Shown here one piece after another: positions 11,569-20,476 of a stretch of 64,000 nt of DNA. A program made the position numbers and the translations under genes. The stretch's first letter is position 1. Each line of letters opens with the position of its first letter. The stretch comes from Caecitellus pseudoparvulus. Taxonomy: Eukaryota > Protista > Bigyra: Bicosoecida. Below the pieces are notes generated by a model. It had not been told where the DNA came from, searched no databases, and saw only the letters and a program-made list of their open reading frames with translations. The stretch lies in NCBI GenBank assembly GCA_965644315.1, contig CBFFRQ010000066.1:1-64000 (forward strand). The letters run 5' to 3'.

Positions 11569-12421
11569 ATGAGGGTGAAGCGGCTCAAACAGAGTCGCAA
11601 GATCCTGCGCCTGTACCGCATCAAGCATGGCTTCCAGGCCCCCTTCAAGGTGGGCCACGCATTGTTCCGCACATCAATTTCCGCGGCACTCCCAGCGCCA
11701 CCCCTCCACCGCCTCCGCCCTGCAGGTGCTGCTGGACGGCAACATCATCTTCCAGGCCCAACACATGGGCGTTGTCATGAAAGACGCCCTGGTCAAGCTG
11801 CTCCACACCGAGGAAGTGCAGGTGTATGTGCCAGCAAGCGTCCTGGCCGAGCTGGAAGCACTCGGCGATGTGGGCAAAGCGGCCCTCAAAGTCGCCGCCT
11901 CCCTGCCACGTCTGCCAGATGCGCCACCACCACAGGCACATGAAAGCGCGGCGGAGGCGCCCCCTGCGAAAACGACGCACGCTGCCGCAGCCCCTGCCGC
12001 CGGCATCGTGCATTTGACTCGCGACGGCAACGCAGAGCACTACATGGTCGCAACGCAAGACCAGCGGCTGCGGGCCAAGCTGCGCCGCACAGGTGTCGTG
12101 CCCACGCTGTACTTGAACCAGAACGCCCTCGTAATGGAGCCGCCCCCCACAGGCATGGCCTCTACCGAGACTGGCAGCACACCAGGGGCCGCGCCGAAAA
12201 CCGCCGCAGCTGCAGCAGCAGCAGAGGAAGCAGCTGCTGGCCAGGGGCAAGATAAGGCCATTGGTGGGCGCAAGCGGCGGGCAGCTGGGCCCAACCCCCT
12301 CAGCGTGCGCCGGGCCAAGAAGCCACGAGGGGAACCTGCAGCAAGTGCAGCAGGCTCCAAACGCACCCGCCGCCGCACCAAGCGTGCAGCCGGCTCAACT
12401 GAGGCAGGTTCGGATCAATGA
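11569..12421 (+). CDS. UTP23: UTP23 / Fcf1-family PIN-domain rRNA processing protein
   Basis: MRVKRLKQSRKIL..Y...GFQAPFK, intron 11650-11725, then VLLDGN. Also YMVATQD..LR.KLR...VP and the C-terminal GPNPLSV motif. Confidence 0.9.
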
Positions 12422-13075
12422 TATGGCAAGGGATGGGATGAGGTGAGCTTCTGCTTGGCAGGGCTGGATGAGGCCTCCAAGTGATGTGGCAGCGTGCCAT
12501 GTCCGAGCCGTGGACGGTAACGATACAGAAGGTCAACGGTTGCATGAACTTTCACTGCACCGTCTGGAATCTTGGCCTGCCCTTCTTTGTGTATCCCTTG
12601 CCGTGGAGTGTTTGCAAGAGCCGTTGTGAAGAAGCTGGTTGGAGCTGACGAGTCAAGCAGGATAATGTCTCTGGTTGAACTCAGAGCTGGTGCTGAGTCA
12701 GTCTTCGTTTGCCAATGAACTCCACGTTTGCCCTGAAGGTGTCAAAATGCAGTTTGCACTTGGGGAGACTATTCCTTGTATCTCAAAGAAGGGCTTCATT
12801 GCCATCGAGTCTTCGGTTGAACCGCTCGATGATTCCAACCAGACCAGGCCACATCAAACGGAGACTCGATCCAGGGCAGAGCTCTTAAAGCAGGTCCAAT
12901 TTGGGAATGTGAATTGGTATGTGGTGAAACGAACGCTTCTCTTGCGTGCTCTTGGTTGAGCTCCCTCGGTAACTTGACACACCAATCCTCGCGAGCAGGT
13001 GTCAGCCAAGGAGCACAGTATGACGTTAAGCTCTACAGATTCAAAGCAACAGAGATCCTGGACCCTGCTTTCACG

Positions 13076-15780
13076 TCAGATCATGCCTTCAAGCTCGGAA
13101 AACTTCCTTGCCTTCTCTCTGACCTTGCTCGGGATCCTGCGATCACCGCTCAGCGCCAGCAGCTCCCGCACCACATCCACATGCCCATTCTCGCAGGCAG
13201 CTAGAAAGCCAACCCCGGTGCTGCCCTGAGGCCCAGCACGCACACCCACTGCTCGATCACCCTCTACCGCCAGCAGCTCCCGCACCACATCCACATGCCC
13301 ATTCCCACAGGCAACTGTGAAGCCAAGCTCAAGGCTGCCCTCAAACCTTGCATGCACCCCCACTGCTCGATCACCCTCTAACGCCAGCAGCTCGCGCACA
13401 ACATCAATGTGCCCATTCTCACAGGCAGCTATGAAGCCAGCCTCATGTATGCCCCAAGGTCCAGCGTGCACATCCACAGCACGATCACCCTCTAACGCCA
13501 GCAGCTCGCGCACCACATCAATGTGCCCAAACCTGCAGGCAACTAGGAAGCCGTGCTCAGGGCTGCCCCAAGGTCCAGCATGCACGTCCACAGCTCGATC
13601 ACCCTCTAACGCCAGCAGCTCGCGCACCACATCAATGTGCCCATTCCCACAGGCAGCTATGAAGCCGGCCTCAGGGCTGCCCTCAATCCTTGCATGCACG
13701 TCCACAGCTCGATCACCCTCTAACGCCAGCAGCTCGCGCACCACATCAATGTGCCCATTCCCACAGGCAGCTATGAAGCCGGCCTCAGGGCTGCCCTCAA
13801 ACCTTGCATGCACGTCCACAGCTCGATCACCCTCTAACGCCAGCAGCTCGCGCACCACATCAATGTGCCCACTCTCGCATGCCGCTCGGAAAGCAGCCTC
13901 CGGGCCATCGTCATCCCTCGCGTGCACGTCCACAGCCTCATCACCCGTGAAACTCAACAGCAGGTGCACCTTCTCCACATCACCATCACGGCATGCTTGC
14001 ACGAACAGCTCGTTCCTTGGCGATCCTGCCGGTGCTGCTTCGAGAGTGGCAATTGCTCTCTGCTGCCAGCCAGCCATGAAACGTTCTGTTGCCGGCAGAT
14101 GCACAGCGCTCCCGCAGAAAGACTCACATGCCAGGGCATATGCAGCCGTGCAGCATGTGCTGCCACCCTCTGCCAGTGCACCAAGTGTGCTGGACAGGGC
14201 GTGCTCCCCGCCATCGGCGTGACTCTCAAACACTTGCCCAGCCGATGCTGACCCAGCCTCTGTCGTCCCGAGCACCGCATGCAACACACTTGCCACATCA
14301 GCATCAACACCAACAGCTCTACTGATGCCACCGTCCACATCCCATGCTCCACAGCATGCACTCAGCAACACTTCAACCCCACCCCCACCCACTGCCTCGG
14401 CCAACGCAGCCACACTGCCGCTCTCCACACCCACCACCACAAAGCTCCCCAAGCACAGCCTGCCCAGCTCCACACCACATGCCTCCGCCACAGCACATGC
14501 ACCCAGCACCTTCAAACACACTCGCTGCTTCATCTCCAGCCCAACATCTTGCCACGCCTCGTCATCCACAAACGCCCCCAGCGGCCACCCTCGCTCACAC
14601 TGTGCCTGCACCGCCACATCACTGCGCACACCCAGCGGCTCATCCGGCCTGGACCCGGCGCAGTTATGAGTCACCGCCAGCCCATGCGCAGCTTGGGCCA
14701 ACCGGGGCAGACCATGTGCCTTGCGAGTGGCTTCAGCACGCTTCACAGCTGCAATACTCCGGGCCAGCGCTGAGGCTCCCAAGTCTGCCGCTGCCGCCCA
14801 CTCGATGACATCACTGTCATTGGTCTCCGTGTCAGGGACGATGCTGCTCTCAGCCATGTACACACTCGCTTCCTTCCCACTCATAAAGCTCACGCCGGCA
14901 TCCAGATCGATGCCCGCTGCGGCCGTCAGCTTGCGACCACTGATTGGCCCACTGCACACCAGCAGCTTTCGCAGCTCCTCCACTGCACCCACAGCTGACT
15001 CCAAGTGCTCCGCGGCGGCGTCACTCCTCAGGTCGCCTGCTGCCTCGTCACGAAGCAAGGCCGCTTGCTCCTTCATGGAGGCCAGCGCCTCATCCACAGC
15101 GGCGTCACCAGCACCATGTGTAGGTGCAACTGCCACCCCACCCACATCCACACTGGGAGCTTCGCGGCTCTGCCACCATCGTGTCAAGTCTGCCAGCGCC
15201 CCTTCCACGTCAGCGCCGGCGCGCACACTGCCCCACGCCTCCACAATGGGACCCCACACCGCATCTCCAGCCGGTAATTCCTCCACACTCACCCCAGAGA
15301 CGGCCTGGTGCAGGCTCCCTAGTGCACAGAAGCACCGAAAGGACAAGTACTCCAGTGCAGCGCACAAACTCTTGCTCAGAAGCTGCCCCTTGAGCTGCCC
15401 AGCGCGGTCCAGAAGTGCACTCCCTGCACCCCGCAGCAGACTCTCCAGCTCCACAAGGGTCATGGCTGTGGGAGCATCACCTGCAGTGATTGCTTCGCCG
15501 CGCCCAATGGCCACAAGCCCACGCAGTGCTGGGCCATACAGTAGCTCCCTTCCAGGCTCGCACTGCAACTTGACCAGGCACGCCACAAGCACACCGGTCT
15601 TCGCATCATCCCCACCAGCTTGACCACCTACAGCAGCTCCAAACCCTGCAGCTGGTGCGTGTGCTGCCTGTGGCGTCGCGCAGTGCCGGCGGGTGGGATG
15701 CCGTCAAGACGGTTCGGAACTTGGTGGAAGTGGTGGCGACAGCCACGCCAACTGCAGCTAAGTGCCGCTCCACGCACCAT
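13076..15780 (-). CDS. Helical domain + degenerate (pseudo)kinase + ankyrin-repeat protein, about 864 aa
   Basis: 838-aa ORF, extended by a first exon whose coding part is only the ATG (15780-15778) and intron 15777-15668 (GTGCGT..CAG). The ankyrin array is clear. The kinase fold is inferred from motif register. Confidence 0.75.
13136..13940 (-). repeat. Seven coding tandem repeats of 114 bp (38-aa ankyrin units)
   Basis: Equivalent positions at 13175, 13289, 13403, 13517, 13631, 13745 and 13859 give an exact 114-nt period. Constant part GH(I/V)DVVRELLALEGDRAVDVHA. Confidence 0.97.
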
Positions 15781-16644
15781 CGCGGGTGACGACAGGGTGT
15801 CTTCACCCAAAGGCGGATGAGATTTCGTCATTTCTATCAGGAAGATTCACGGGGGGGGGGGCGTGCAGACCTGAGGCCGCGCTGGCTTGTATGAGCGCTT
15901 TAGCAATCTCACCATTGCCCATCTTGCTGCAGACAAGAAGGCCAGTAAACATATGCTCAATAGGCTCTCAAATGGTTAGTCGTGTTGGCGATACGTGCCG
16001 TTGATTTTGTTGTATGCTATCCGCTGGCTGTCTGTCTGCTTGACGTGGTACCTTCAACCGCATCCTTTGTCCGACCCAGTCTCGGCATTCAGCGGTCAAA
16101 CTCCACCTCCCGTTTGCTCTGCACAACAACTTGTGATTCGCTGTGTTTTCTATGCCTGAGTACGGGGCTTCCTATTTGGCGCTCTTGCGGTGACAGAGGT
16201 GCCGGTCCCATATATACCCAATACAATCACGTGCGACGCCCAGCCAGCTCCTCATGCCCAGCTCAAGAGCTACAGCAGAGCTCTCACACTTCGCAATTGG
16301 GCATATGCCAGGAGCACCTTCTCCCCTTGTCACGGAGTTCAGCAGGTCGGGCAGAGGATGTGGATGCCTGCGCCTGGACCCACACAGCCACCACCGCCTC
16401 CCATCCCTGGAACAGTGCCTCGCACAGCACCAAACCAAGGGGAACCCTTCTCGGCTCACTCCCAGCATGGAAAGTGCCTCTTGCTGGCACCGCGTGTGGC
16501 CCTGCTCAGCTAAGGGGGCTTCGACGAACCTCGTGCAACCCCCTCAGACACCTTTCCTCCGCACCCTCAAAAGCACACAACAGCAAAATCAATACCGACA
16601 CCATCAGCTCTCACACCTCACTCGACTCCCCCTCAGTGTCCACA

Positions 16645-18094
16645 ATGTCCATGCGCACTCGTTTCGGGGGGCAGCACCAGCCACCCGCCACGTGCAGCGA
16701 CGCTGAGAGCGTTGCTTCATCCTCCACGTCCACTGAGGCTCGCCGCAGCGTCAAGCGGCGCCGAGGAGTGAGCTATGCGAAGTCTCGCCAACGAGTGACT
16801 GATGACGAGCTGCAGCGTCTCGCTGACTGCGGCGACAAGGCAGCAGGTGAGGCCGCCTCGTGCCAGCCACCAACGCTGCCACGTGGAGCAGACACGCCGC
16901 CCTCCACCCTGCGCAGCCCGCAAGCTTCGCAACCGTGCGAGCGCCCGACAGTGTCGACAGGCCAAGGAGGCTGAAGTTGACAAGCTGAGGGAGCGCGAAG
17001 CTGCGCTGCAAGCACAGTGCGTGTTTGGGCGTGTGTTTCCGCGAAACGCCCGGAGCAGCGCTCGTCTCACGCACCCGCCCGCCTCTTCCGAGCAGGATGC
17101 AGTCCATGCAAGACATGATCAGCAAGTTGGTTCAGGAGAACATGCAGTTGAAGCAGCGCTTGGATGGCTCCGTGGCTTCGGCCGGTGCACCTACCCCAGC
17201 AGTGGGTGAAGTCCGGTTCCTTGCCTCAGCACGGCACATGCCTGGCATGCTGCGCTGTGCGCCCTTCATGGGGTGCACCGCGTAGGCAGCCAGGACGTGC
17301 GCTGTGCTGTGTCAGGTCCTGGGCTCACAGCAGCGAGGCTCCAAGACGGCCCCACCCCTCCCTCTGCCCCCACCCCCCTGTCTAGCCTGGCGTTCCAACG
17401 CAGCCCGTAGCTGTCGCAGACGTGCTTGGCGCCTCAACCCCCTCAGCACTCCACCTGACAGACACACCTTGAGGGCTTATCGCTTATTTCTTCCCCTTTG
17501 GGTGTGTCTCGACGGCGTTGAGCGCGGGGGGGCAGGCTCCTTGACCGTCTCGAGGCAGCAGCTGCGTTGGGCGCTTGTGTTGGCTTTATTGCGGGGGCAG
17601 GTGGGAGGTGGTGTGGCCACAGGCCGGCAGTTAGGGGCATCTGTGCCACCAGCTGCCTGCCTGCTTGGAGCCTCGTGCGTTTCCGAATTGCTTCGGGAGC
17701 CCCGGCCGACACCACGGTTCCATCCACGCCTTCAAAGGCCCTCACCTCCAAACCCAGCAGTGTGCAGGGTCCCACCGCCCTGCCCATGCACTGCACGGAA
17801 GACGACCACCCTGCCAAGCGGCCCCGTTTGGGCTTTGTCTTGGGGGACGACCCTGCTTCCACGGCAGGCTCCACCGCCTCTCCGACAAGCACTCTGTGTG
17901 ATGCCTCCTCAAGGTTCGACTTTGAGGCAGACGTCGTGCTGCCTGAGCCCCCCGCGCTCCTGCAGGCATCCTCTCTGGATGCCTTTGACATGGACGCGCT
18001 GTGGCCAGGATGTGCGCCCCAGAGTTTCGCGGCTCCCCCCACCGCCCCGCCATGCGCGCAGCCATTCCTCTTTACGGATGACTTCATGGCGTGA
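16645..18094 (+). CDS. bZIP transcription factor (middle exons unresolved)
   Basis: Introns 16847-16916 and 17017-17095 give RKLRNRASARQCRQAKEAEVDKLREREAALQAQMQSMQDMISKLVQENMQLKQRL (N-x7-R basic region plus zipper). An acidic C-terminal exon is assumed in ORF 17567..18094. Confidence 0.72.
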
Positions 18095-18154
18095 CGCGGC
18101 AACTGCGTGTCTTCCCTAATGCAGCGATGTGACTTGTGGCCCTGCATTCCATGC

Positions 18155-20476
18155 TCACTGCTCTCTGGCAACCCCCTGCTTCTTGGCTTTGCGCTTCATG
18201 AGCTTGTCTTTCAGCTGCTCCAGCTGCGCCAGGTGAGCGTCGGTGGAACCCGGTCGTTTCTTCTCCAACGCACGCCACAGCTTGCTGCCATGCTGTGCCC
18301 ACAACCGCTCAATGCCGTCCAGGCGTTTCGGCATGTGCTCGCGGCAGTACGCCTTCAACACGTGCACATTGACTCGCTGCAGCTCGCTGTCGCTCAGCTC
18401 CACCCTTGCGCTGAGTGGCTCGGGGTTCGTCAGGGTAGGCATGGACGTCACAGGAGCCATGTCCGGTTCAGGGCCGTGAGTGGATGAATCCGCGACGCTT
18501 CGAGACTCTTGAGGGTGTGAGTCGCTTGCCGGCGTGACCAGCGCGCGTTCACTGGCGGCTGAGACAAGGCCGGCAAGAGTTGAGCCCGCCACTCCAGTGA
18601 GCATATGCTCGTACTCCTTGGAAAAGGTGTCTCGTGGAGTTTCTTTCTCCTGCTGAGCCTCGTGACTGGTCAGGCACTGTTCGCCCGCCTCCACATCCCG
18701 TGCTTTGCCCTCGTCAACTTCGCTCAGGAGGGCGCCATCGCTCAAGTCAGGAGTGGCGCCAGGTTCGTCTGCCTCTTGAATCTGCTGAGCAGGTGCTGAG
18801 ACTTCAGCTGCACTTTGAGCTGCTTCATCGCTTGGAGCTCTTGCTCCACTCTCCGCTGCACCAAGCAGCTCCCCTTGCCACGCTTCTGCGCCACCTGCTG
18901 CGACTACTACTATTGCACCATGAATCTTGGTCGCAGCTTTCTTAATGCTGTCCATCAAACACGCCAGCTCAGCTTCTTGTTCTGGCTGGTCATCTGATTG
19001 GGGATGCTGCGCTTGCGCCAGAGGTTCATCCAGTTCGCCTTGAATGCTGTCACCTGTTGCAGCTTCGTACGCTTCCTCATCAGAGCCAGCTCTGTCATGT
19101 GCAATAGATGGGGTGGCCTTGCTCTCCTGCTCCGGCATCTCTCCCTGGACTGCCGATGCCGGCTGCTCCCCCTCGCCCAGACTTGCACCAGAGTCACTTG
19201 CCTGCTCAGCTCCATCGGCCAGCAGCGACGGGAGTTCGTGGCCGGACTCCAAGCCAGCAAGTTGCCCGGGTGCTTCTACGGGCTGAGTCTGTGGTTGCTC
19301 TGTATCGTCACGCTGTGGTGCCGCCTTTGGCGCGACGTGCTCCTGCTGCAGCATGACTTTTCGGGACGCCATCCATACCACACCGGCCAAGCAGTACGCC
19401 ACTTCCACCCCCAAGTTCACTGGCGTGGGTGTCGGGGCTGACGATACACTGGACAGTTCACTGGCGTTATCAGCATCTGCGTTCGTGCTTACCTTCGTGG
19501 TGGAAGTGGGTGGGAGTGTGGATGCCGCTGGTTGCGGCGGGCGGGATGGCTCCGCTGGCAACAGCTCCGTGCGGGAGAAGGGCTCGGGGCTGCTCCATGA
19601 CAGGCTGAACTGTTGCAAGCTTTCAAGGTCCGTGTGGCTCTGCGGAGATGAGTCAGCGGCTGGGCCAGCAGTTGGACCTGGTTCGGGAACCGGCACTGCG
19701 CTGGTGTCGGTGCCAAGGAAAGGCATGGGGCTCGTGAGGCCCGCCGCCACAGCAGCTTGCTGTTCTGCCCACCACTTGTCGAAGTGGCGCGCCTTGTGGG
19801 CATGGATCAGCTCCTCCACCTTGAGCATGGGGGACGTGTACGGCGCGTACTCGATGCTGGGCGCTGCCGAGCCGTACTGCACAGGCACACGGGTCGTGCG
19901 ACCCTTGCCGTGCCGGGCGACGCTATGAGCAGCATGTGATGATGCCTGTGAGGCTACGTTTGCGGCAGCTTCTGGGCTGACGGCCAACACAGAGGTGGGC
20001 CGTGTGCCAGAGAGGCTGCCTGAGCTCGCGAGACTTCTGCCGACTGGGGGCAGCGTCAGCGATCCGCCGAGCCTACTGCCGCCCCGACGACGCGAGTGGC
20101 CATGTATCAGGCCAGTCATTGGAGCAGGTCTGCCCTCAGGGCTCCCGTACACGCTCTGAAGGAAGTCGTCCTTGTCTGAAGGAGGCTGCTTGCGCCGCTG
20201 CTTGCGCTGGGCACGCATGAGCTGCGTGGGGGACCTCCGCTGACTTGGCGCGGTGCCTCTCCTTCCTTGAGGCGCCTTGCTTGGTCTAGATCTTCCGGGT
20301 TGAAGTCCGGGGCCGCTGTCGGGCTTTGCAGTGACAGGCTGTACGCCAGAGTCACCAGCCTTTGGCCCGCGGTGCAATGCGCGCTTGCCTGCAGGGAGTG
20401 CCTGGCTGACGACCCCCCCTCTTGGCTTTGGAAGACGAAGTTTGGTGTCTGAGCCAGCCATGCTTTGTGTCCGCAT
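18155..20476 (-). CDS. Hypothetical low-complexity protein with a small C-terminal helical domain
   Basis: 773-aa ORF, basic then acidic and likely disordered. The C-terminus LKAYCREHMPKRLDGIERLWAQHGSKLWRALEKK looks folded. AATGCA lies 7 nt after the stop. Confidence 0.6.
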   Translation of the reverse strand: MRTQSMAGSDTKLRLPKPRGGVVSQALPAGKRALHRGPKAGDSGVQPVTAKPDSGPGLQPGRSRPSKAPQGRRGTAPSQRRSPTQLMRAQRKQRRKQPPSDKDDFLQSVYGSPEGRPAPMTGLIHGHSRRRGGSRLGGSLTLPPVGRSLASSGSLSGTRPTSVLAVSPEAAANVASQASSHAAHSVARHGKGRTTRVPVQYGSAAPSIEYAPYTSPMLKVEELIHAHKARHFDKWWAEQQAAVAAGLTSPMPFLGTDTSAVPVPEPGPTAGPAADSSPQSHTDLESLQQFSLSWSSPEPFSRTELLPAEPSRPPQPAASTLPPTSTTKVSTNADADNASELSSVSSAPTPTPVNLGVEVAYCLAGVVWMASRKVMLQQEHVAPKAAPQRDDTEQPQTQPVEAPGQLAGLESGHELPSLLADGAEQASDSGASLGEGEQPASAVQGEMPEQESKATPSIAHDRAGSDEEAYEAATGDSIQGELDEPLAQAQHPQSDDQPEQEAELACLMDSIKKAATKIHGAIVVVAAGGAEAWQGELLGAAESGARAPSDEAAQSAAEVSAPAQQIQEADEPGATPDLSDGALLSEVDEGKARDVEAGEQCLTSHEAQQEKETPRDTFSKEYEHMLTGVAGSTLAGLVSAASERALVTPASDSHPQESRSVADSSTHGPEPDMAPVTSMPTLTNPEPLSARVELSDSELQRVNVHVLKAYCREHMPKRLDGIERLWAQHGSKLWRALEKKRPGSTDAHLAQLEQLKDKLMKRKAKKQGVAREQ

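Follow-up and report, generated by a model that had tools for sequence, protein, structure and literature searches.

A stretch of 64,000 nucleotides (nt) from the bicosoecid Caecitellus pseudoparvulus (Bicosoecida; assembly GCA_965644315.1, contig CBFFRQ010000066.1, positions 1-64,000), referred to here as the window, carries on its minus strand a gene for a predicted protein of three parts: an all-helical N-terminal domain, a domain with the predicted fold of a protein kinase, and a C-terminal array of ankyrin (ANK) repeats. The first two, of ~210 and ~285 amino acids (aa), make up one constant module, and the repeat array is the variable, exchangeable part. The protein, of ~864 aa, is probably soluble and cytosolic: a signal peptide or transmembrane segment was not found in it, and its hydropathy maximum of 1.8 sits within the folded kinase core. 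The gene belongs to a family of paralogues, and the best overall explanation, which is given an even chance of being right, is that these are three-part, receptor-like proteins in which the constant module bears variable arrays.

The gene and its repeat array

The gene had originally been placed at 13076-15780. An open reading frame (ORF) does run without a break from 15667 to 13076, with its stop codon at 13076-13078, and to that extent the proposed span stands; no ATG opens this frame, and the upper limit of 15780 is reached only by way of a predicted intron. The ATG at 15780 does not share the frame of the long ORF and is cut off from it by in-frame stops, so that it is plausible as a start only if a 110-nt intron is removed. 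Directly after this ATG comes GTGCGTGG, and an acceptor at 15668/15667 (CCACAG/GCAGC, the slash marking the junction) brings the frame back. The same arrangement, an ATG followed at once by GTGCGTGG, recurs in 26 of 30 paralogues (including the upstream regions of L002-L032), at a distance of 146-226 nt before the conserved domain, and in 17 of those paralogues read-through from the ATG is blocked by frame or by stops. A spliced model was therefore adopted, in which the ATG (15780-15778), the 110-nt intron and exon 2 (15667-13076) would together specify 864 aa. In what follows the GTG codon at 15592 is residue 1, and 26 is added for the spliced model; searches and folds used the exon 2 sequence. 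The features of the gene and of the relatives discussed below are collected in Table 1.

Table 1. Predicted features of the gene, its neighbours and selected paralogues (window positions unless a locus is named)
Feature	Position	Strand	Basis
Start codon, whole coding part of exon 1 (Met alone)	15778..15780	-	Predicted from paralogue conservation
110-nt phase-0 intron, GTGCGT...CCACAG	15668..15777	-	Predicted; frame restoration
Exon 2, entire coding body	13076..15667	-	Open frame
Ala/Gly-rich N-terminal leader, 25 aa, poorly conserved	15593..15667	-	Paralogue comparison
All-helical N-terminal domain, residues 1-210; invariant LSFRCF and DLTRWW	14963..15592	-	AlphaFold2 models
Very diverged predicted pseudokinase, eukaryotic protein-kinase fold, residues 211-495	14108..14962	-	AlphaFold2 model
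Putative catalytic-loop equivalent, residues 372-383, CGVELGRLCLGS	14444..14479	-	36-member column counts and secondary-structure order
Putative DFG-equivalent, S-A-C here, [GS]-A-C across the family	14354..14362	-	36-member column counts; secondary-structure order
Variable linker between pseudokinase and array, residues 496-527	14012..14107	-	Poorly conserved in alignment
N-terminal capping ankyrin repeat, residues 528-553	13934..14011	-	Pfam Ank_2 match from 532
Seven 38-aa ankyrin repeats, residues 554-819	13136..13933	-	Pfam, tandem repeats
Conserved C-terminal tail, IPSKVREKARKFSELEGMI	13079..13135	-	Shared with P0003, P0007
UTP23/Fcf1 PIN-domain gene	11627-12421	+	E 1.1e-12
bZIP, weak match	16802-17209	+	E 4e-5, below Pfam cut-off
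Module, ANK and 32 Sel1 repeats	L023:2-5719	-	Paralogue reading frame
Module, ANK and 18 Sel1 repeats	L027:2524-7908	+	Paralogue reading frame
Divergent member, ~31% identity, module C-terminal	L029:4067-8416	-	
Divergent member, ~31% identity, module C-terminal	L030:1-4470	+	
Divergent member, ~31% identity, module C-terminal	P0016		

Ankyrin repeats are the sole family that Pfam recognises in the protein, from residue 532 to the end (Ank_2, E 1.5e-30; Ank_3, E 3.2e-19), which bears out the original assignment of an ankyrin array downstream of the kinase-like region and resolves it into seven repeats of 38 aa. Tandem Repeats Finder reports the same region with a period of 114 nt and 7.1 copies at 13140-13946. 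The seven repeats follow the motif GF-AAC--GH-DVVRELLAL, in which TALM does not occur, and share a mean pairwise identity of 75% in protein and 80% in DNA. Their differences are concentrated at repeat positions 6-8, 10-11, 13, 16 and 20-21, that is, in the loop and at the start of the first helix, mainly where the binding face of ankyrin repeats usually lies.

The predicted pseudokinase and its helical partner

Upstream of the array, residues 1-505 were modelled with AlphaFold2 on 36 family sequences. The model reached a predicted local distance difference test score (pLDDT) of 84.8 and a predicted template modelling score (pTM) of 0.86, and the five models lay within 1.6 pLDDT units. Residues 1-210 are helical in the model, and residues 211-495 form a kinase-fold domain in which strands, a long helix, two strands, short helices, a long helix, a strand, a helix, a strand and further helices follow in that order. 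The predicted arrangement is bilobal, with an N-lobe beta-sheet and alphaC, a hinge, and a helical C-lobe. When compared with the PDB by Foldseek, the domain retrieved kinases exclusively, at weak E-values (from 1.6e-3), and the structural match lies well over the background that the tool states for a mixed alpha/beta domain. At the top of the structural matches is the MLKL pseudokinase, within 1 Z unit of ALK, IRAK4, RIPK and plant receptor-like kinases (RLKs), and the kinase domains of TNNI3K and RIPK are also among them. Language-model features of the domain likewise fall on kinase clusters, and a search of viral structures returned ordinary viral kinases only, with no closer relative.

The positions at which a kinase would hold its catalytic residues appear to be vacated throughout the 36 aligned members. 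The position of the HRD Asp is occupied by R in this gene, and by G in 23 members, R in three and D in one; that of the catalytic Asn is S here and in 32 of the 36. No conserved Lys is present in the strands before alphaC, indicating loss of the beta3 Lys, and nowhere in the domain does a Lys, His or Asn come close to invariance. With its catalytic positions lost family-wide, the whole family would therefore be dead for canonical phosphotransfer. The residues that are conserved in the domain comprise E287, R290, the segment G294-L-P-R297, Q300, Q329, C332, W336-P337, D344, E370 and six cysteines. These near-invariant cysteines lie within residues 332-481 (window 14100-14600), three of them at the former catalytic-loop and DFG positions, and the set could be a metal or redox site.

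The original prediction had arrived at a dead kinase by reading motifs along 14910-14110 (residues ~228-494), a stretch that coincides with the kinase-fold domain of the model. The replacements that it named, catalytic Asp by Arg and Asn by Ser, fall in the catalytic loop of the model, at positions that read G or R and S across the family. It had also noted the lack of a DFG motif, and the equivalent position, on the strand before the activation segment in the model, indeed reads [GS]-A-C. The motif alignments themselves fared less well. The segment GVELGRLCLGSFVV, which had been aligned with GxxHGDLxxxNxxx, follows a long alphaE-like helix and enters a strand in the model, and so is in a fitting structural position; as sequence evidence, the alignment is at chance level. 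A glycine loop of the RIO type (GKEAxVY) was rejected, G239 and K240 being present in just 11 of 36 members, so that the resemblance is a chance match.

More generally, sequence methods give no kinase signal for this domain. Pfam produced no kinase match (Pkinase, PK_Tyr_Ser-Thr) at E values up to 1, a PDB profile search for a kinase found nothing, and hhalign returned a probability of 0.06% when the domain profile was compared with eight bona fide PF07714 kinases encoded in this genome. Because this comparison with real kinases gave no signal, the motif alignment is unsupported as sequence homology. The kinase register read from motifs thus lacks a sequence basis, and its conclusion is upheld by the predicted fold: structure prediction and Foldseek on the kinase-like region point to a kinase fold with dead motifs. 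Both the three-part architecture of the protein and the identification of the domain as a catalytically dead and very diverged kinase fold are rated very probable.

The helical domain that precedes it, put at ~260 aa in the original prediction, measures ~210 aa. Folded alone it has a pLDDT of 85 and a pTM of 0.65, and because the pTM of the whole module (0.86) is far above this value, the models suggest that the helical and pseudokinase parts pack as one unit. As modelled, the helical domain is an orphan fold with no known match: neither Foldseek nor the unbiased VIA-align matched it in the PDB (best Foldseek E 0.49), and the ESM Atlas gave a TM-score of at most 0.34. Among the structural matches of this domain there are no entries for MLKL, HeLo or the four-helix bundle (4HB), and identity with the 4HB/HeLo domain of MLKL was rejected after the solo fold and the PDB and ESM Atlas searches. 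Language-model features of the domain give weak hints of generic helical repeats.

A family with a constant module and exchangeable arrays

The gene is not single-copy. As the original prediction had expected, it has paralogues: at least 80 matches to the module occur in the 30.6 Mb genome, at 32-85% identity to this copy, the nearest (85%) being on contig C26. About 75 of 80 are long open frames without stops, and some are fragments or contain stops. Eighteen residues are invariant down to ~30% identity.

Beyond this genome, the N-terminal 505-538 aa had no matches in Pfam, NCBIfam or PADLOC, and PDB sequence and profile searches with the N-terminal part were empty. A word-based search of 5.8 billion proteins returned nine unnamed metagenome proteins, and HMMER, run exhaustively with a profile over 1.84 billion representatives, returned 20 proteins, 19 of them from the family itself. 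Those of the 19 that were checked sit in a tree beside the genome's own paralogues, at distances of ~0.01-0.2, and therefore come from this organism or one very close to it. For the twentieth, P0023, hhalign (probability 92.5%, E 4.8e-7) shows a relationship that is real but distant; this protein lies on a metagenome contig with a guanine-plus-cytosine (GC) content of 59% and carries Sel1 repeats too. Judged by these searches, the family is lineage-restricted, with one remote relative outside it among the 1.84 billion representatives. No published description of the family was found in the literature and databases searched, which agrees with the initial failure to recognise it as a described one.

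The arrays attached to the module were compared in 33 module-bearing reading frames on sampled loci, out of the at least 80 copies. ANK arrays of 38-aa units are present in 27 of these frames and contain 1-20 repeats. Two frames have a short ANK stretch (2-4 repeats) followed by 18 or 32 near-identical 36-aa Sel1 repeats; in these two (L023 and L027), the putative sensor array is swapped for another repeat type. In a further two of the 33 the module resides at the C-terminus of a long protein. In the divergent members L029, L030 and P0016, ~960-1100 residues without a Pfam match precede the module, and in both genomic matches (L029 and L030) the genome search shows a single internal TGA. Next to one family member, on the opposite strand, is a 966-aa frame with 18 Sel1 repeats and no module (L020:5716-8613, minus strand).

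The two portions of the protein differ in how they evolve. Compared with the C26 paralogue, the module has a ratio of nonsynonymous to synonymous substitution (omega, or dN/dS) of 0.34 (0.26 in the helical part, 0.38 in the pseudokinase), and the helical-pseudokinase module is under purifying selection. When the seven repeats of the gene were compared with one another, those positions at which other paralogues are hypervariable gave a dN/dS of 1.58 and the framework one of 0.30, the value above 1 resting on 8 codons in 7 repeats, a small sample; this is suggestive of diversification at the ankyrin binding-face positions.

Copies of the module are unevenly placed in the genome. Tandem copies are common, C71 having five and C79 four. 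Of 79 copies, 36 are on contigs shorter than 100 kb, and on large contigs 49% of copies are within 100 kb of an end, as compared with 30% expected. Telomere repeats of the TTAGGG type, seen as (CCCTAA)n, begin contigs C196, C43, C19, C67 and C211 (L055, L056, L059, L060 and L062); family members lie 19-80 kb from the telomeric ends of C196, C19, C67 and C211, and the C43 copies lie ~610 kb from the end. The copy described here occurs singly and lies 14 kb inside the end of contig C66. The genome also holds at least 88 ordinary kinases, and its canonical switches of NOD-like receptors (NLRs; NOD, nucleotide-binding oligomerisation domain) amount to six marginal NACHT matches, with no NB-ARC.

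Several observations concern the surrounding DNA and its presence in read data. GC content is 59-62% across window positions 12001-20000 and 63-67% in the surrounding window, and GC skew over the gene is strongly negative (-0.15 to -0.22), as would be expected if the coding strand, here the minus strand, is rich in G. Read contigs are short and cross-map among paralogues, and exact pieces of the gene occur in two samples of one organism; the summed depth of these contigs is very high over the C-terminal tail because the sequence of the tail is common across the family. In marine samples, DNA read contigs of relatives are 90-95% identical to the gene. Over window positions 14435-15584, contigs 92-93% identical to the module were found in a seawater run that is labelled metatranscriptomic and flagged as probably DNA; these could be transcripts of a related copy or strain.

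Possible functions and known parallels

On the best reading, the three parts of the protein would work together as a receptor made of sensor, switch and effector. The ankyrin and Sel1 repeats would bind diverse protein ligands, the pseudokinase would serve as a non-catalytic switch of conformation or oligomerisation, as in MLKL, JAK JH2 or ILK, and the helical domain would relay or execute the signal. The family would then be a set of receptors for recognition inside the cell, with viruses, parasites or conspecific non-self as the most plausible targets, and would operate in the manner of fungal NLRs with a pseudokinase in the place of NOD. This proposal of a non-self receptor agrees with how the protein is built, with the exchange of repeat arrays, with the number of copies and with the way selection acts on the parts; the near absence of canonical NLR switches from the genome and the enrichment of copies towards contig ends also count in favour. 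A receptor function for the family is given somewhat less than an even chance. A bolder version can be put forward only tentatively: the family may be a kind of intracellular receptor not described before in eukaryotes, for immunity or allorecognition, whose switch is a cryptic pseudokinase instead of the NOD/STAND (signal transduction ATPases with numerous domains) ATPase, set between an orphan helical executioner and interchangeable, diversifying ANK/Sel1 sensors, and which would form the main innate repertoire of a marine protist nearly without canonical NLRs.

The fungal NLRs offer one parallel. They are marked by highly conserved ANK, TPR or WD repeats with variable binding-face positions (PMC4986451), and the original prediction, which had read near-identical repeats with variable surface positions as such a mark, is in agreement with that description. 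Like HET-E and the NWD proteins, the present protein combines an N-terminal domain, a central module and C-terminal repeats that form a superstructure (PMC4986451). Also shared are high internal conservation of the repeats, variable binding-face positions, variation in repeat number, the use of more than one kind of repeat with related central modules, and repertoires that are large and variable. In contrast to the fungal proteins, Pfam detects no NACHT or NB-ARC P-loop NTPase here, the pseudokinase occupying that place, and none of the known fungal effector domains, HET and HeLo included, is related to the N-terminal domain.

The layout of MLKL (mixed-lineage kinase domain-like proteins of vertebrates and plants), to which the protein had initially been likened, is a looser likeness. 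In both, an N-terminal helical region is followed by a dead kinase fold, for which a non-catalytic switch role is plausible. Unlike MLKL, however, this protein has an N-terminal domain that matches neither 4HB/HeLo nor any other solved fold, and its kinase part, which ties with ALK, IRAK4, RIPK and plant RLKs, is structurally as close to many kinases of the tyrosine kinase-like (TKL) and tyrosine kinase (TK) groups and has no detectable sequence similarity to MLKL. MLKL itself has no array of repeats at its C-terminus and is present in one or a few gene copies. The animal proteins ILK, RNase L, RIPK4/ANKK1 and TNNI3K resemble the family in that one chain carries both an ankyrin array and a kinase fold, which is non-catalytic in ILK and RNase L. 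The repeats are N-terminal in ILK, RNase L and TNNI3K. These proteins are single-copy, conserved and recognisable by sequence, and none among them is known to have hypervariable repeats or family expansion.

The closest described parallel in architecture and expansion is the Nek and 21.1 proteins of Giardia. The Giardia Neks number 198, of which 71% are dead, and mostly bear 1-26 C-terminal ankyrin repeats that affect localisation (PMC3218828). There, too, a protist-specific expansion couples mostly dead kinases to a variable number of ankyrin repeats, and some domains are too diverged for standard models (PMC3218828). The members have been proposed to serve subcellular targeting (PMC3218828), and an analogous role would give the constant module of the present family a housekeeping or cytoskeletal job, with the arrays placing it at different sites or with different partners. 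The architecture of the gene matches the Giardia proteins in outline, ankyrin and Sel1 arrays are general protein-protein adaptors, and this copy is situated among ordinary genes. Fixed partners, however, would not be expected to produce high identity between repeats, variation focused on the binding face or dN/dS above 1, and the enrichment of copies near contig ends and in tandem clusters and the confinement of the family to one lineage also argue against such a role. Moreover, the Giardia domains can be recognised as Neks and are joined to divergent repeats of the TALM type (PMC3218828), whereas here a TKL/TK-like fold hidden from sequence methods is preceded by a 210-aa helical domain and followed by near-identical 38-mers with focused variation, which Sel1 arrays can replace. 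A targeting or scaffolding role is the main rival reading and is rated unlikely.

A second alternative is that the kinase-like domain is alive, either as an atypical enzyme or as a sensor of nucleotides, metals or redox state, with a relocated active site built, for example, from the near-invariant Cys, Glu, Arg and Gln residues, and with the repeats recruiting substrates. Some presumed pseudokinases, such as SelO and WNK, have proved active with altered chemistry, and the domain does retain near-invariant polar residues (E287, R290, R297, Q300, Q329, D344 and E370) and six near-invariant cysteines, including C372, C406 and C413 at the former catalytic-loop/DFG positions. Yet it lacks a Gly-rich loop as well as any near-invariant Lys, His or Asn, most of its conserved residues fall within the alphaC-beta4 loop, beta5, the hinge and alphaD-alphaE, regions that typically serve interaction or structure, and sequence similarity to any enzyme family was absent from Pfam, PDB profile, NCBIfam and PADLOC searches. 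Activity of this kind is rated improbable. Finally, that the copies form a fast-expanding, largely functionless or selfish subtelomeric family, many of them decaying and their kinase likeness convergent or over-interpreted, would accord with read libraries of DNA only, with the enrichment at contig ends and on small contigs, with the fragmentary or stop-containing matches and with the failure of sequence profiles to detect a kinase, but is very improbable given that ~75 of 80 matches are long and open without stops, that the module is under purifying selection (omega 0.26-0.38) and that 18 residues remain invariant to ~30% identity.

Against the receptor proposal itself several points must be weighed. 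It is an inference from architecture and sequence, and the Giardia proteins illustrate that an expanded pseudokinase-ankyrin family can serve subcellular targeting and not immunity (PMC3218828). The kinase fold is a predicted structure, derived from 36 closely related sequences, in a domain whose sequence profiles hold no kinase signal, and the equivalences of the catalytic motifs were assigned from the order of secondary-structure elements in the model, not from residue-level superposition. The libraries in which the gene occurs are DNA runs only, with the start codon and intron predicted from the genomic sequence, and the codons behind the elevated dN/dS are few. In addition, this copy is flanked by housekeeping-type genes (UTP23/Fcf1 and bZIP) and lies outside any cluster.

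If the receptor reading is nonetheless true, marine protists would have built an NLR-like repertoire on a dead-kinase switch and an effector domain with an orphan fold. This would extend the range of ways in which eukaryotes are seen to assemble innate immunity, and would provide a handle on virus-host and parasite-host interactions in plankton. Whatever its function, the family adds a predicted pseudokinase lineage that is invisible to sequence methods, together with an orphan helical domain, and it represents a natural library of ankyrin and Sel1 binders on a fixed scaffold.

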